From the NCBI GenBank assembly GCA_907165135.1, contig OU015569.1, positions 9,114,001-9,178,000 on the forward strand: a stretch of DNA of 64,000 nucleotides, given 5' to 3'. Each line of letters opens with the position of its first letter. The stretch's first letter is position 1. Origin of the DNA: Oikopleura dioica. Lineage: Eukaryota; Animalia; Chordata. Under the pieces are notes generated by a model. That model made no database searches, was not told the DNA's origin, and saw nothing but the letters and a program-made list of their open reading frames with translations. The position numbers and the translations under genes are program-made. Below are positions 54,935 through 64,000 of this stretch, piece after piece.

Positions 54935-55006
54935 AGGTCCTACCGAGATTTGAACTCGGATCGCTGGATTCAGAGTCCAGAGTGCTAACCGTTACACCAT
55001 AAGACC
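54935..55006 (-). tRNA. tRNA-Gln (anticodon CTG), identical inverted copy
   Basis: Exact reverse complement of 54808-54879, with its own T5 terminator. Confidence 0.97.
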
Positions 55007-55329
55007 GTTGAGAGAAGATCAAAATTTTATTTATATATTAAATAATTTAAACTTAAATCAAAATATTGTTAATAATCTGAATCTAAAAAGAGCACAGCTG
55101 AGAATTTCGCTCGCTGGAGAAAAGTAGCTCTATAAAAATATGGACTTTAAATTTTCAAAGCTTCAGTAAATCAAATGTAGAATCATGGTATTTCTTCGAG
55201 ACGTAAAAGAAGAGCTGACTTTGAGACAATAAGAAGATCTTACCTGTAGTGACAGTGGCTCGAATTTTCGAGTCGAGCTCCTATGTCGAGATTCATGAAA
55301 TTTTGGTATTTTGAAATTTTGGTTATATA

Positions 55330-56339
55330 GAAACGACAGCAAAGAAGACGGCTTTGCCAACATCGTTAAGCAACAAACGGAATTCGTACATTATGTACTC
55401 TCTCAGGATCAAATGACCAGGAAACTGAGTAGGGATCATCATTGTCTTCTTCGATATTTTTTCGGAGCGAGAAAATTTGACTGGGAAATTTTTTATTTTG
55501 AAAATTGCTTTTTTTCGGTATATCAACTTCTGAGTAACTGATTGTCTGATGAAAATTTATGGCCACGTAGCTTTTCAGTCTTGTACAGAGAGAGCCCTTA
55601 GATTCTCATATGGGATGAATGTGCTCTTGGAATGCGACTCATCAGCTTGATGATAGGATCATTATTATAATCTGCTGTTGGGCCCTCTAGACGAAAAGTC
55701 TGTCAGAAAATGCAATAGCCAAATATAATATTTTATAATAATTTATTGAATATGATTGTGCTTTTCTGGCAGACTATGAATTATTACTTTTGCGTAATTT
55801 ATTAATATAAGAATAAATCAAAATTGACAAATTTTGAATAGTAACTCGCAGAATAGAGAAACTCCCAATTTATTGACAACAGCAGTGCGAAGCTCCCCAT
55901 AAAAGTTTTTCGAGAAGAGATATTCAATCTTGCGACCACCAATATCGACTCATTAGAAGTTGGCCAATGTTAAAATCGAAATATGTCGTTTGAGTCTGGA
56001 TAAGAGATTAGATCCAAATTGACGAGGATGAGATTCATACTTTTTTCCCTGTTAAACTTCTGCTTTCTCGGAGTCGACTCAGAATCAATCGGTTAGTTGG
56101 ACCTTCTCTTCCTTGATTTCAAACAAAGGTCTTCAGAAAAAGCAAGAATAAGAAGAATGCTTGAAGACAGATTGAGACCACGAAGAAGAGAATCGACTTA
56201 TCAAGTTAATACGAAGCGCAAAACGAAAAGAAGCTTTGATAAGATTATAGGCTAACGATGTTTTTTTTAAAACCTTGAGTAGCTTTAACCTAAACCTTGA
56301 GCTGAAGCCTTGAAGCAGCGATCGTCCGAGATTCTCCAT
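55330..56339 (-). CDS. Hypothetical multi-exon protein
   Basis: ORF 56339-56133 plus downstream open stretches such as VDIGGRKIEYLFSKNFYGELRTAVVNKLG. The model was not resolved. Confidence 0.35.
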
Positions 56340-56676
56340 CGTTCTCCTCGTAAGTGATAGATTTGCTTTTATTTCGCGTCACGTTTTTACATAGAACTCG
56401 TACTGTACAGTGCACACCGTTGGAATAGAAAAGGCCTCATTAGAGGAGAGAGACATTACATTTATTTTTTGTTTTCTAACTGGCCGTGCATTATTAATTT
56501 TTACAGATAGGCCATTTTACTGTTACGTGGTTTGAGATCAAAGCGATGAAAATCAATGCTTAAGCATTCGGGCGCGATCATTTTTTAATAATTCTGATAA
56601 CAGATTTTACGCGATCAGCGCTCCAAAAACATCAACCTTTGGGATTCAATTAAATAAGCTTTTTTTCAGAGAAGAA

Positions 56677-58802
56677 ATGCGTTTTTGCTTTTTCTTTCTT
56701 AGTTGCTGTAGACTCGCATTTGCGTTGTCCATAAATACGACAGAGGTGCAAGAGTCGCTAAAGATTGAAGAAAAAACTATCAGAGACCTAAAAAGTAAGG
56801 GTGTTGGAAAATTAATGCGACTTCGTGGACGCTTGACAGACCAAGACAGAATAAACAAATTACTAAGTAATTATCATACTTTCCGGTGTTTCTTTTCGTC
56901 TTTGAAAATGACATTGATTTTAGTACTGAACATAAATTAGGTTAAATATGAAGCATTTTATATTTAACATTCCCATGTGTTTTGATAAAATATGAGCTTG
57001 GATGAGAACTGCTTTAACTCTATGTGATTGCAGGTAAAATGGACAAGAGAATTCGGCCATTCGAAGATATCGCACCTTTGAATGTATCTATCAACCTTTT
57101 CATATCCTCTTTCGACTCTATCGCCGAAACAACGATGGACTTTGGGCTCACATTTATCATGAGGTTAGCAAAGATAGTTATGCATCGCTGTCTAAGTATA
57201 TTTTCAGGCTTCGCTGGCAGGATCCGCGGATGATGTTCCCCGACATTACCAACGAGAAGACTTACAACAACCGGACAATCTTGACCATGGACTTGAAATT
57301 TCTGGACGAGCTCTGGGTTCCTGGTTAGCATTAACAAAACGCTGTTTCTAAAGTATCTTTAGACGTCTTCTTCGCGAATGAAAAGTCAGCGAATGTGCAC
57401 CAGATAACATCGGATAATAAACGGCTTCGCATTGACTCGGCGGGCTACATTTATCTAGAGATGCGTTTATCAGCCACTTTATCTTGCCATATGCGATTCG
57501 AGCATTTCCCGATGGACGTTCAGGTGCTTTCACGTTTTAGCCCAGCACTGGTCTTCTCTAACCGTGAAGTTAGGTCTGTGCGATCGAGATCGAGTCTTTT
57601 GCATACGATACAGCTGACGTCAATTTCGACTGGGACTCCACTCCCGGAGGAGTCGAACTTGCACGTTCAATCGAATTGCCCCAATTCAAATTACAAGGTA
57701 GACTAAAACTTGGTTATTTCGTTATGAAGATGAATGAATTTTGAGGCCATGTTCTTGGTAAATGCGACAGTCCACGAGGAAATTTCACGTGTATAGAAGG
57801 AAAATTTATTCTTTCTCGTCAGATGGGCTACTATCTTATCCAGGTGCACTATGATATCAAATATATATATTTTTTAATTTTTTTTCTCGTTTTGGAAAAC
57901 TTTTTGTTCCTTCTGACAGTTAGAAAATAGAAGAATATCGTTTATTGTTTCAAGTTTGAACTGAGAGTTTATTCCTAGGCTTATGTGCCAACGACGCTGA
58001 TCGTGATGCTGAGCTGGATTAGCTTTTGGATTTCGATCAATGCGACTCCCGCACGTGTCTCGGGCCGTGGTTGCTCAGATTCCAAAGCCATAAATTACCA
58101 TTTCTCGGGCAGAAATTATGGCCTCCATGACCGTGATAACGTGTCAATTTATTCGCGAAACTGAATGGAGCGCGAGTCTATCGCTATGCTTATTAGCGGC
58201 AAATTAAGACGCTTAGAGATATTGAGCCGGAGGATTAGTTTGCTAACCGGATCAACTTGAGTGAGCACTTCGTCTAAGCTAGGAATTACGACTGTTCTCA
58301 CCATCACTTCCCAAAGAAGCGCACTTACAGACAGGGATGCGAATCTATTCGTGAAAGTTTTATTTTATTCAAAAACTGTAGAAATAGATAGTTTTCCATC
58401 TCTTCATTCAGCCGCACTGCCGATGGTTTCTTATGTCATGGCCATTGATATATGGGTCCGGTTCCAAATGAATAAATTATTTTCGCCGATTCAAAAGGAA
58501 AAAAACAACGCATCGGACCCTTTTAAAAGATGTCACTTTGCATGGCTTATGTTTTCGCCGCAGTGGTCGAGTATGCGATTGCTAACTTCATCGACAAACC
58601 TGATATTGATCGACTGGCTAGGAGAGCGTTCCCCTCCACATTTGCGGTCGTCTGGTCAGTTTTATCTTTGTTTTCCTTCTTTTTCATTTTCAGCTCTTTC
58701 TATTACGCGTACTATGCCGTCTGCGTGAACGAACTTCCCGGCCTGAGCGAGCAGATGACCCGTTGGGTCGGCGACGAACGAATGCGAAAGCTCAAACCAT
58801 GA
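56677..58802 (+). CDS. Cys-loop ligand-gated anion channel, glycine-receptor-alpha-like
   Basis: Signal peptide, WVPDVFFANEK, Cys-loop LSCHMRFEHFPMDVQVC, RQMGYYLIQ, LSWISFWI, PARVSLGITTVLT (anion-selective PAR motif), LPMVSYVMAIDIW, VFAAVVEYA. Confidence 0.92.
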
Positions 58803-58839
58803 ACGGCCAAATTTAATTTGCTACCGCGTACAACTGTCA

Positions 58840-59800
58840 ATTTGTCTGTATATTGAATATATCGGAACTCGATTGCCTCAACAGATTCTTGCAGCGCTCA
58901 GAATTTTCGCAAAGGTGTTCGATGCAGCCTTTCCAAATGCTTATATAGAATTCCAATCTGAGAAGCTCAGCTGAACTGGCGCTTATCTAATCCACTCCGC
59001 GACAAGAAGCTTAAATTTCATAAGCTCGTCATAATTTTTCCACGCCTTAAATTTGATTGTAACGAAATCTCTGCGTTGACTCTGGCCACGGTTACGAAAC
59101 AAGCTTATCAAGGGACTTCTTCAAGGAACCAAGCCATGTTTCTTCACGTAAGGTGCATCGCCCAAAATACTCTATGTTGTGTATAAAAATATGACGACGA
59201 ATTTAGCCACTCAAATTCTGTTAGATCTCACGAACACATAATTCTCTTATTGCAATTTCATTATAGTAAATGTTACAAAAAGTACCCACAAGAATCTATC
59301 AGCTGTTGCAATTAAATTTAACGTGCTTTTAAAATTAATTTGGAGAATGAAAGTTGAATAATTTTAAAAGACTACCATTCGAATAATATATTTCACCAAG
59401 ACTAGCAAAATGCTACACTACTAGAGATAATAGCTAATAAAGGATCTCAGAAGGTCCAACTAAAAATGCGCTTCTTAGGGTCAAACGTGCCAAAATGCCG
59501 ATTTTTTGGTGAAATGGAAACATAGGAGTTAGTAGATGGATTCGAGAGGCTCCGAGGTTTTCGTGAGCTGCTGCTGTTACGCTCAGTAGATGTGTCGATT
59601 AGTGGTTATAACGTGGTTTTTCATGATTATGGTAGTGTGAGGTGTTCTAATGATGTGGTTTTTGTCGCCCGGGGCGGAGACCAGTTTCGAAAGCGCCTCG
59701 CATCGGAGGATGAGGACGACGCTAGTGAGTCTTTTTACCAACCGCGCCGCACGTTTCCTACTTTTTTCTAGAGCCCGAGTTCTCAGAGAAAAAAAGGGTT
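58840..59800 (-). CDS. Hypothetical multi-exon protein
   Basis: Open exons such as RDFVTIKFKAWKNYDELMKFKLLVAEW and AELLRLEFYISIWKGCIEHLCENSERCKNLLRQ...QTN*. The start was not resolved. Confidence 0.35.
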
Positions 59801-59997
59801 GAGACCGAGAAAGAAAGTCGGTTGAAGCCAACAACCGCGACGGTCAAGAAGAATACTAAAACTACACGAGAGCAGTGAAAAAAATAGAGCCTAGAACAAG
59901 AACAAGAGCAGAAAAAACGCGCAAATCATGAAACTGGTAGGTCCCCGAATCGCCCGCTAGAGGCGCGCCTGCGAGCATAGAACGTTAACATTAACCG

Positions 59998-60027
59998 ATG
60001 ACCTTGGTGTTCAAGGTCATTTGACCT
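59998..60027. promoter_or_regulatory. Cluster of three nuclear-receptor half-sites (TGACCT..AGGTCA..TGACCT)
   Basis: atgaccttg-gtgtt-caaggtcat is a perfect 9-bp inverted repeat, immediately followed by another tgacct. It lies upstream of the protease gene. Confidence 0.35.
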
Positions 60028-60590
60028 TTTTCCTCACTTATGGGTGTCAATAACGATCGAATAAAATTCGGCAGATGAATTTTATCGAGCTTTTTTTATA
60101 GCTTTAGCCGAATAACTTCGATCAAGCAATCAAAATTGATATTCTTCAGATTCTAACACAATGAAGAATTACTTTTTTATTTTGAAAGTATCCAATGAAG
60201 ACCATTAAAGAGCGCTAATATTATATAAAATTCAGAGTATCAAGCTTATTGAATATTGTTTTCAGAGTACAATCAATATTCACGATTATAAGAACTAAAT
60301 TTTTTTACGCGAAAATAACCATTCATTTTTCAATTGATATTGAAGTGTAAACAATGTGATCATAAAGAGAATAAATAATTTGCTTTATGTAATAAAAATT
60401 GTAAAAAAAAATCGGCAGTTTCGATAATTCATGCGACGGAGATCGAGATACTTAGCAGTTTTTGAAGTGTTGTGAGATCCATTGTGTAGAAAGTCAGAGA
60501 ATAACCCGTACGGTACTATGCGTATTTTTACTTGTTTTTGTGCTATGTAAAGCGTTATCATAATAACGTTGAGCCTCTGTTACCACTTTC

Positions 60591-63358
60591 ATGTTAACAT
60601 TCCATGCCGCTTGCGCAATAGTTTTTCTAAACGAAAGTCACTAGCTGCATGCATTCCTGTGCGGTATGCTCCAATTTAAACGCATTCTTCTAGCTTCCGA
60701 GCCTGGCCGTATCGTACGCTTATGCAGGTCGGGACCTCGGTGCAAACACGCAAGGAGGAGCAAGTCGCCTCCCGACTCCAGCTCATGTTAGCTCTTCTTC
60801 GATGGAATATCTGGGCGACAGTGGAGCCAAACAATCCTTGCCTGACGACGTAGACAAGCAGACTTGGAATCAAAATGAGGGCGTCGTCGGAGAAGACTCC
60901 AACACGCGGGAGAAAGGAAATCTACAACGTAAGTAACACCAGCTCCTACAATTATTATCGAAAGAATCTAATAATAAGTCTTTCTAAATAATAATTACAG
61001 CTGGTTACTGGTGCGATCAGAGAGAACACACCAAACAAGACGCGATGGATCCCTTTACTGTCGATTCACCCGACTGGCTTCTCGAGAAAGGGGCTTACTC
61101 GCCTCTTTCAAGAAGTCGTGGAAACGGAGGACGACCTTCCGTCCAGCTTTCCGAAAAAATTATTGGTGGCCAAAATGCTCAAGAGCATGCATGGCGATGG
61201 ATTGCCTATTTTTACGGCTGTGGAGCGACACTGGTTGCCAAGAATTGGGCTGTCACTGCCGCCCATTGTTGTACCATTCCTGCATGGTACTTCAAGGATA
61301 AGGAACTTTGCTTCGGCCGAGACTACAAGAACCCGGAATCCATCGGAAAGCCATCACTCCAACAATGTGCGGGAATCAGTCAAATCCTTCAGCATCCCGA
61401 GTACAACCGAACAGTCACCGTTATGAACGATATCTGTCTCTTGAAACTCTCGAGGGACGTTCTCTACAACGATCATGTGCAGCCTGCTTGTCTTCCCAAT
61501 CAGTTTGATTCTCTTCAAAATGACCTCGTTCTTTCTGAGGCAGAGAAGGAAGACACTGAAACCTTTCCCATTAATCCAGATACCGGACTCCAGACGCAGA
61601 AAATCGACTGCTTTGTCGCTGGTTGGGGATACCGACAGGAGAATAAGTGGACTTCTTTGCCAGACATTCTTCAAGACGCGCAAGTTTTCCTTCAATACAA
61701 TGAGACATGCGAAGCAGCTTACACTGACGTCGATTCCAGCGGCAACACCATTAATTACTACGATTCCAATGCTATGAGCTGCTTCGGCCACGAAGAAGGA
61801 GGAATCGATGCCTGCCAAGGTGACTCTGGTGGACCTCTGATCTGCCTTGAGCCTTCTACTAACGCCAAATGGGTGGACGATAACGGCAATCCCATCGTTC
61901 ACATGAACCCTGTTCTACGAGGAGTTGTCTCCTGGGGAGAAGGTTGTGGCAGACAAGGAAAGCCCGGCGTTTACGCCCGAGTTTCCACCTTTGTCGACTG
62001 GATTCATGATACTATCAGAACGCATGCTCGTGGTTCCCCTGCTGCTTGTATCGACGTTCGAAGCAATTACAGGATCGAGAACGATGTCAGCGTTATTTGC
62101 GGTGACGATGGATGTGACTTCAGCTGCGCCGACAAGTCGCACACGTAAATTAATTGCTCTTAATCATTTTTCACAGCTCTTTTCAGGCCAAATGTTGAGC
62201 GCGTCAACTGTCAAAAGGTGACTGGCTCCTCCAGAGGAAAATATGAGTACGTATTTGTTACCTTAGTGAGCCATGTTTTACGTGAAATAATTCAGCGTTC
62301 CACCCCAACTTATTGGATGTGCTTCTGATCCAAACCACTTCACCAAATGCGGCTCTGTCACCGCCTCCATCAATGTTCCTGATCTAGATAAGATGAAGAT
62401 CAATTGCATGACTGCCACTAAGGTTTCGATCACCGAAAATTTGTAATTTTTAACACTAATTTTAAGTGCAAAGTCACCGTCCGAGAAGCGTACAAAAAGA
62501 CTTGCGAGCCATCAGTCTCTCAGCTCAAGTGTGTTCCAAACAAGGGATATGATTACCCATACGACGAACTTCGATGCGAACGTAAGAGAGATGATCAAAA
62601 GCAAATTTATTGACTTGTATACATAGGACCGAAGACCACAACAAAATGCGGCCCTGTTCTTCAGAAATTCCCAAATCTTACTGATGACTTCATCATTAAC
62701 TGCATGACCAGCAAGTGCAAATTCGCTCACAAGTCAGGATTTGCCGTCAAGCCCGCTGAAGTTAGATGCAAAGGTACATCTTCAATGTCAAAAGTATTTT
62801 AATTTTTTGTTAAGCCAACAAATGGGTGATCCCACCATCAAACCGAAATAACAACGGTGGCATTGATTTCCAGCTTGTAACATTCGACTCGCTGCCAGAA
62901 GACACTTTCTGCAAAGGATTTGTAAGTTCTTTATTCTCCTAAAGGCATTTCTTAAAACAATATTTCAGAGTTTGAATGAGCACACAGAAGGCAACTACAG
63001 ACCACATGCTAAGGAAGTTCAATTTATGGGACAAGGAATTATTTCAAGACCAAGACCAAGTTGTGATGCCAAGGGTGTTTGTAGCTACTACTGCCCGTCT
63101 GATTACAACGGCGGTATGACGAAAATCGGCCGCCCGTTCAAATGTCATAAATCCAAGGTGACAGGAGTGCAATAAAGCAAATGTAAAAATTTGATCTAGG
63201 GATGGCTTCCTATCGTTTGGGCTGGCAAGCTGAGCTGTCACGATGTCTTCAATAAGAATAAACTTTATGATGTTGAATCAGGTGATTTATCAGATGATTT
63301 TTCCGACTCATCTGAGTCCTCAACGCAGGCAGCGACGACTCAAACAACAGCCATCTGA
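60591..63358 (+). CDS. Secreted trypsin-like serine protease with about four C-terminal Cys-rich (sushi-like) modules
   Basis: Signal peptide, activation site EK|IIGG, VTAAHC, NDICLLKL, DACQGDSGGPL (intact triad, S1 Asp), VVSWGEGCG...PGVYARV. Followed by C..C.F.C...P....C repeats. Confidence 0.93.
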
Positions 63359-64000
63359 TTGTCTGAGTGTGCCTGTTTGAAACTGCGTTTGAAACAGGGT
63401 TAGCTTACTAATCCTTCTATATTTCAGGATAATTGAACTGGCCGAAAATGTCTCGCCGTCGTCGATTTTCCACTGTACAAAGTTGTCCCTAGCTCAAGAC
63501 CCTCACACGCGCCCCGAAACTAAACCAAAATACCCCTACGTTAATATGCCCAGCTTCTTCTTGTTCAAAGCTTTCGTGAAGAGCGCCCGGTCGCTTCCCA
63601 AGCTGGCAGGGAGCTACCTTACCCTTGCAAACTTTGCGCCTACAAAATGTTTCGTATACACTTCTCATGCGAAGCTGCCTCTAGGAGTGAGGAGATCACC
63701 ATTTATCACCACTGCAGAGGTGGCAGAGACTAGCTTCATTAATCGTTGTTGTCAACTCCAAGTCAATCCCAGTTGGCCGCTGCCAACCGTGAAAGGGCGG
63801 CGCACCGTGGGGCGGAACCTAGCCGTCCTTTCACGTCCCGCTCGCGGCCCTGCTCGCACCGACCCTTATTATGGCAAACATTTTAACATTAAAACAGTAT
63901 CGGTAAAAACATTTACATATCGACCGCAACTACTACACATAAGCAATTCATGAAAAAAAAACTCTTAAATATCTGTGCAAATATTAAATATAAGTAACAA

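Follow-up and report, generated by a model that had tools for sequence, protein, structure and literature searches.

Eukaryotic Cys-loop receptors usually carry a large intracellular domain between the third and fourth membrane helices (M3 and M4), and a review describes this domain as unique to the eukaryotic members of the family (PMC4801368). It is said to contribute to assembly and trafficking, to anchoring at synapses, and to conductance and desensitization. What is known about loop-less receptors comes so far from bacterial homologues or engineered deletions, and their behavior has been inconsistent. The M3-M4 loop of the prokaryotic channel GLIC is, in crystal structures, the pentapeptide ESQPA (PMC3335078). 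When the loop of 5-HT3A was replaced by two to seven alanines, the receptor was functional and its desensitization depended on linker length; no currents were obtained when ESQPA was the linker in that receptor (PMC3335078). Human glycine receptor alpha1 joined by only a heptapeptide from GLIC aggregated and was non-functional unless both flanking basic motifs were kept (PMC4891346), and among engineered loop-deleted receptors generally, several are functional and others aggregate (PMC3335078, PMC4891346). Turns of the five-residue type are described in the searchable literature only for bacterial or engineered channels. In a full-text literature search, neither a loop-less natural Cys-loop receptor from an animal nor any work on the glycine receptors of larvaceans came up; much of the subscription literature lay outside its scope, so that a prior description is possible. 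Oikopleura appears in a broad pLGIC inventory solely on account of Cys-less sequences (PMC4795631). Alpo4 of Alvinella was considered as a natural short-loop receptor and rejected, as its intracellular domain spans residues 308-412, a length of 105 residues (PMC10338036).

Here we describe a gene on the + strand at positions 56677-58802 of the window (the whole 64,000-nucleotide stretch of DNA that was analyzed), which has approximately 11 exons, encodes approximately 410 amino acids and belongs to the Cys-loop receptors most like glycine receptor alpha subunits, yet lacks the large intracellular domain usual in this group. The exon model was built by reading the three forward frames and by comparison with a paralogue. 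Its coding lengths total 1233 nt, a multiple of three, and all exons are open in frame. The features are as follows.

56677-56866, + strand: exon 1, with the ATG, a hydrophobic signal-peptide-like N-terminus and an N-terminal extension (open frame; GT donor at 56867)
57034-57163, + strand: exon 2, start of the ligand-binding domain, beta1-beta2 (weak PF02931 match; solved-structure matches)
57208-57323, + strand: exon 3, ligand-binding domain (protein identity 63-77% to the paralogue and L013)
57363-57523, + strand: exon 4, a further part of the ligand-binding domain, containing FPMD and the first of the two Cys-loop cysteines (PF02931; solved structures)
57574-57697, + strand: exon 5, second Cys-loop cysteine, loops B and F (sequence reading; PF02931; solved structures)
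57746-57843, + strand: exon 6, loop C with its disulfide, and the pre-M1 segment (solved-structure matches)
57979-58062, + strand: exon 7, M1 followed by the PAR motif that precedes M2, with a non-canonical GG donor (PF02932; RNA reads)
58279-58330, + strand: exon 8, the M2 pore helix, with an uncertain 3' boundary at 58330 or 58333 (conserved M2-M3 loop length)
58331-58411, + strand: 81-nt segment that is probably an intron; its ends are non-canonical, and it is stop-free and in frame (absent from the paralogue, L013 and L015)
58412-58455, + strand: exon 9, M2-M3 loop and start of M3 (14/14 residues identical to L012 and L013)
58530-58654, + strand: exon 10a, in which M3 is followed by the five-residue turn, the basic pre-M4 motif and the initial half of M4 (sequence reading; L012 identity; eight-locus alignment)
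58590-58604, + strand: the turn IDKPD that replaces the intracellular domain (read from the sequence; pattern in eight loci)
58655-58693, + strand: GT-AG intron of 39 nt inside M4 (position and phase as in the paralogue, L012, L013 and L015-L018)
58694-58802, + strand: exon 10b, the remainder of M4, the extracellular tail of 24 residues with NELPxL, and the TGA stop (relatives)

Family calls were made from searches run exon by exon, with no joined-exon search, fold or tree behind them. Three exons match PF02931, the extracellular ligand-binding domain; exon 4 alone scores 26.7 bits against a cut-off of 26. The Cys loop has the C-x13-C spacing around FPMD and is read across the exon 4/5 junction as C-HMRFEHFPMDVQV-C, and a second disulfide is present in loop C (C-DSPRGNFT-C, exon 6). 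All four transmembrane helices can be recognized, M1 through PF02932 (exon 7, 33 bits against a cut-off of 28.1) and M2, M3 and M4 through alignment to glycine receptor, GABA-A chains and the paralogue. A PAR motif before M2 marks anion-selective members of the family, and this gene carries one across exons 7 and 8 (...ATPARVS-LGITTVL...). The best solved relative was clearly glycine receptor alpha for four of the five exons tested (2, 4, 6 and 10), although no tree was built. In exon 2 the glycine receptor alpha matches reached 33 bits versus 20 for GABA-A beta, and in exon 4 they reached 53 bits versus approximately 34 for GABA-A, with matches down to 9e-14. Glycine receptor alpha was the sole good match among solved structures for exon 6, where beta was weak; exon 5 matched both solved GABA-A beta and glycine receptor alpha, with a slight preference for GABA-A beta. 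An identity of the prokaryotic GLIC/ELIC type was rejected, since the protein has both Cys-loop cysteines and finds its nearest relatives among chordate glycine receptors. These data support an intact animal Cys-loop receptor gene of the anionic, glycine-receptor-alpha-like type, whose function as a channel is inferred.

Among the closest described systems are the vertebrate and Ciona glycine receptor alpha subunits (GLRA1-3; Ci-GlyR, PMC2822779), to which the ligand-binding exons, loop C, M1 and M3 are most similar in sequence. Shared with them are the Cys loop, the loop-C disulfide, the loop B motif E-S-F-x-Y, PAR, M2 and the pre-M4 motif ID-[KR]-x-x-R-x-x-FP. Loop C itself differs, with eight residues between its cysteines here and ten in glycine receptor alpha. 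The glycine-contacting residues of glycine receptor alpha are Arg65, Glu157, Phe159, Tyr202, Thr204 and Phe207. Equivalents of Arg65, Glu157/Phe159 and Phe207 are present, while the Thr204 position is occupied by Arg and Tyr202 falls inside the two-residue gap. The loop-C motif R-G-x-F is kept in the paralogue and in L013. The shortening of loop C by two residues relative to glycine receptor alpha, together with the Arg that replaces Thr204, means that the agonist may be other than glycine, as far as can be judged from sequence alone.

A further difference lies between M3 and M4, where five residues stand against roughly 70-90 in glycine receptor alpha; the loop usual for such receptors has 70-100. 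Positions 58530-58802 form a single open frame on the + strand that runs from the end of M3 (...VVEYAIANF) through IDKPD to IDRLARRAFP, a hydrophobic stretch, a 24-residue hydrophilic tail and TGA, with only the five linker codons (58590-58604) between M3 and the pre-M4 motif. The original prediction had placed M3, this linker and the pre-M4 motif in one exon with about five residues between them and no room for an intron, and the shared exon 58530-58654 bears this out. Its description of the exon as continuous held for M3, the linker, the pre-M4 motif and the first half of M4 but not beyond, as an intron at 58655-58693 splits M4. A tail of about 25 residues had also been anticipated and was found at 24 residues (NELPGLSEQ...KLKP); this conserved tail after M4 is a further difference from glycine receptor alpha. 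The larger inference of a naturally minimal chordate anion channel stands insofar as the gene is intact, selected, of the anionic type and short-turned, while anion conduction itself is only inferred.

When the M3-M4 exon was compared with sequences of solved structures, the top matches were engineered loop-deleted constructs (the GLIC-GlyR chimera 4x5t and GABA-A with SQPARAA). Like these and other engineered receptors (GlyR alpha3 5cfb; 5-HT3A-A2 to A7), the window receptor joins M3 to M4 by a few residues. Unlike them it is natural and conserved, and it is also shorter by 6-7 residues in the same alignment frame: the linker enclosed by the terminal N-[FY] of M3 and the first I-D of the pre-M4 motif has 5 residues here and 11-12 in the constructs. 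The very short turn is shared with prokaryotic GLIC/ELIC as well, and proline is the fourth residue of both ESQPA in GLIC (PMC3335078) and IDKPD, but the window protein differs from GLIC/ELIC in being metazoan, in having both cysteines and in its glycine-receptor-level similarity. Searched alone against Pfam, the M3-M4 exon scored under threshold, which we attribute to the profile's expectation of a loop. The basic motifs found at both loop ends of glycine receptor alpha are not both present in the window protein. There is no RFRRKRR-type motif after M3, where IDKPD offers one Lys and two Asp, and basic residues occur only on the pre-M4 side (R-x-x-R-R).

The M4 intron (58655-58693, gtcagt...ttttcag) is in frame and without stops. 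At the same codon and phase of M4, the paralogue carries a canonical GT-AG intron that breaks the frame and contains a stop. The corresponding intron of L012 is 40 nt and shifts the frame, and that of L013 is approximately 590 nt. Spliced, M4 is 20 residues long and aligns with glycine receptor M4 (...F-Y-[WY]...), while read-through would give 33 hydrophobic residues. As M3, the turn and the pre-M4 motif share one exon, the five-residue turn is unaffected by this intron. The 5' end of the M4 intron is GC in L013 (L013:2725) and GA in L016, L017 and L018; such non-canonical donors, GC or GA at the M4 intron across four lineages, appear to be common in these tunicates. The 81-nt segment at 58331-58411 is a second stop-free segment in frame. 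L012 has an unrelated 78-nt counterpart (L012:81-158), also in frame and stop-free. Because the length of the M2-M3 loop is otherwise invariant, we treat 58331-58411 as probably a young intron, although a translated insert would also be possible. If retained, it would place 27 extra residues inside the gating-critical M2-M3 loop.

We then considered how far the short turn is shared. A whole-genome search with the M3-M4 exon brought up a paralogue. This gene (L010), on another chromosome piece (G000:C4, approximately 4.8256-4.829 Mb, minus strand), is a full gene with 73% protein identity to the window gene and reads NF-INKPD-IDRIARRAFP at the same place. Several of its introns are placed differently, which indicates intron turnover since the duplication; it has no intron before M1 or in the M2-M3 loop and one extra inside exon 2. 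A search of 1.8 billion representatives with the M3-M4 exon returned 11 matches, ten of which were short ORF fragments of this receptor family from metagenomes. The eleventh, P0004, was an unrelated repeat protein and was rejected. The same search, made with a 90-residue query that is weak for distant relatives, returned no full-length annotated protein and no short-linker relative outside this group. The contigs of the relatives, seven in number (L012-L018), are marine metagenome assemblies. L012 represents a sister lineage of the window gene; L013/L014, L016, L017 and L018 represent more distant lineages with NF-IKKPE-IDRLARRVFP; and L015 groups with the C4 paralogue (NF-NKKPE-IDRLSRRAFP). 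The turn follows the pattern [I/N]-x-K-P-[D/E] in 8/8 aligned loci.

Conservation of the protein is strong at saturated synonymous divergence. Summed over exons, pS was 0.74-0.86 in four comparisons, with synonymous sites saturated, versus a pN of 0.09-0.22. In exon 10a, which comprises 41 codons, the window gene and L012 encode identical protein (41/41) at a pS of 0.88 and a DNA identity of 79%, and the four L013-type lineages have 100% protein identity at 76-91% nucleotide identity. This pattern lies far beyond chance, and on these sequence comparisons the short turn is under strong purifying selection in both paralogues and several lineages. Exon 8 (M2) matches L012 at 17/17 residues and the paralogue at 94% identity, and exon 10b has 56-91% protein identity to the paralogue, L012 and L013. 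The NELPxL motif of the extracellular tail (58694-58799) is kept in the window gene, the paralogue, L012 and L013. By the grouping of the lineages, the duplication that separated the window gene from the C4 paralogue is older than the species splits sampled here, and since both orthologue groups lack the loop, its loss is older still than the duplication.

Loop-bearing receptors exist in the same genome. A third glycine-receptor-like gene (L011; G000:C4, approximately 13277000-13280500, near 13.277 Mb, minus strand) has a conventional long loop, in the order M3, introns, a long N/S/H-rich exon, pre-M4 and M4, and its tail begins with NEL as in the window gene. A crude reading of PF02932 matches across the genome gave a concordant picture: the other receptor loci match loop positions or have gaps of 100-450 nt between M3 and M4, and only the window gene and its paralogue show neither loop matches nor gaps. 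As the loop is retained by a close relative within this genome, we interpret the short turn as secondary loss and not as ancestry. Such a loss is consistent with the general gene compaction of this tunicate lineage.

Taken as a whole, we regard it as likely that the gene encodes a pentameric Cys-loop subunit of the glycine-receptor-alpha-like anionic branch, from which the intracellular domain was deleted in a larvacean ancestor and in which a five-residue proline turn now joins M3 to M4. The subunit would fold and assemble as the rest of the family does, with a ligand-binding beta-sandwich and four membrane helices, M2 lining a chloride-selective pore. Without an MA helix or a loop, ions would leave axially through the cytoplasmic mouth, with no lateral portals. 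The phosphorylation, scaffolding and trafficking sites that are borne on the loop would be absent from the subunit, and any such control would have to be exerted by partner subunits or through the extracellular C-terminal tail, which is conserved. Assembly, anion conduction, agonist, conductance and the consequences for anchoring are all inferred, as there are no channel data and no full-length structure model. Since the protein lacks the post-M3 basic motif and has kept only the pre-M4 basic residues, it would have to be adapted in another way or depend on a partner.

The strongest of the alternatives, although we consider it less probable than the reading above, is that the gene is a conserved subunit unable to form a channel alone, which functions as a heteromer with its paralogue or with a loop-bearing subunit, the partner providing anchoring and trafficking signals. 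The loop-bearing L011 gene is a candidate heteromeric partner. In favor of this, the genome holds two loop-less paralogues and one loop-bearing relative, and human GlyR alpha1 does not arrive at the surface once its basic motifs are removed (PMC4891346). In vertebrate glycine receptors, gephyrin is bound by the beta subunit and not by alpha. On the other hand, homomers of loop-deleted 5-HT3A and GABA rho1 are functional (PMC3335078, PMC4891346).

RNA reads from three bulk runs and one single-cell run, the latter from the same strain and sampled at approximately 4%, were mapped to the gene. Very few reads fell on the gene, and these came from a divergent sister lineage, the M1 reads (57979-58062) being 90-99% identical. 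The matches of the reads that cover M1 are bounded at 57978 and 58062, and beyond 58062 the reads continue into an exact match to L012:29-58, the M2 exon of the sister lineage. Because of this continuation, we conclude that the sister-lineage orthologue is transcribed and is spliced at the predicted M1-M2 junction. The intron after the M1 exon begins with GG (58062/58063; 58278/58279), and the junction is nevertheless confirmed by these spliced reads. Across the four runs, no read covered the M3-M4 exon and none on the gene reached at least 99% identity, and the sampled portion (approximately 4%) of the same-strain single-cell run contributed nothing on the gene; transcription of the window copy itself thus has no direct support from reads.

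The lack of any read across the M3-M4 junction leaves formal room for an isoform with a normal loop, made by alternative splicing or from an unannotated exon, in which case the short form would either be one product among others or arise artefactually from reading genomic DNA. The GG, GA and GC donors of this lineage also make splice sites harder to exclude. We nonetheless consider such an isoform very unlikely. M3 and the pre-M4 motif lie 15 nt apart in one frame, GT is missing from the 15-nt linker and its flanks, and AG does not occur there ahead of the IDR codons, so that no canonical cassette exon is possible and a cassette exon between M3 and M4 was rejected. A whole-genome search with the M3-M4 exon revealed no second copy of M3 or M4 near the gene. 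Moreover, the 15 nt remain coding in eight loci, although the introns of these loci cannot otherwise be aligned. The remaining alternative, a pseudogene or decaying duplicate with a recent loop deletion, might be suggested by the absence of same-strain reads and by the unusual presence of two in-frame intron-like segments, but it is scarcely tenable and we reject it on conservation, as every exon is open, pN is far below saturated pS in all four comparisons, the deletion is common to two paralogues and at least six further lineages, and the orthologue is transcribed and spliced in the sister lineage.

Returning to a loop-less subunit of the glycine-receptor-alpha-like branch, the evidence leaves evenly balanced the broader proposal that larvaceans possess a small clade of such receptors, in two paralogues older than the sampled splits, which form working chloride channels free of the intracellular domain, its portals and its regulation, and which, given the remodelled loop C, are perhaps not gated by glycine; these would be the first natural eukaryotic counterpart of the minimal constructs. 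A naturally selected five-residue turn shows which sequences at the ends of M3 and M4 tolerate loss of the loop, and the receptor offers a compact native target for structure determination. It also raises the question of how a chordate neuron or other cell places and regulates a receptor that has no cytoplasmic handle.

The surroundings of the gene yielded minor observations. A search of 55000-64000 against Rfam gave no match. Same-strain single-cell reads start at 59722-59757 with the template-switch oligo; past 59757 they no longer match the window, and they probably derive from a similar repeat copy elsewhere. Further downstream, 61045-62148 is a single open frame of 367 residues with the motifs of a trypsin-like serine protease (IIGG..., GDSGGP).
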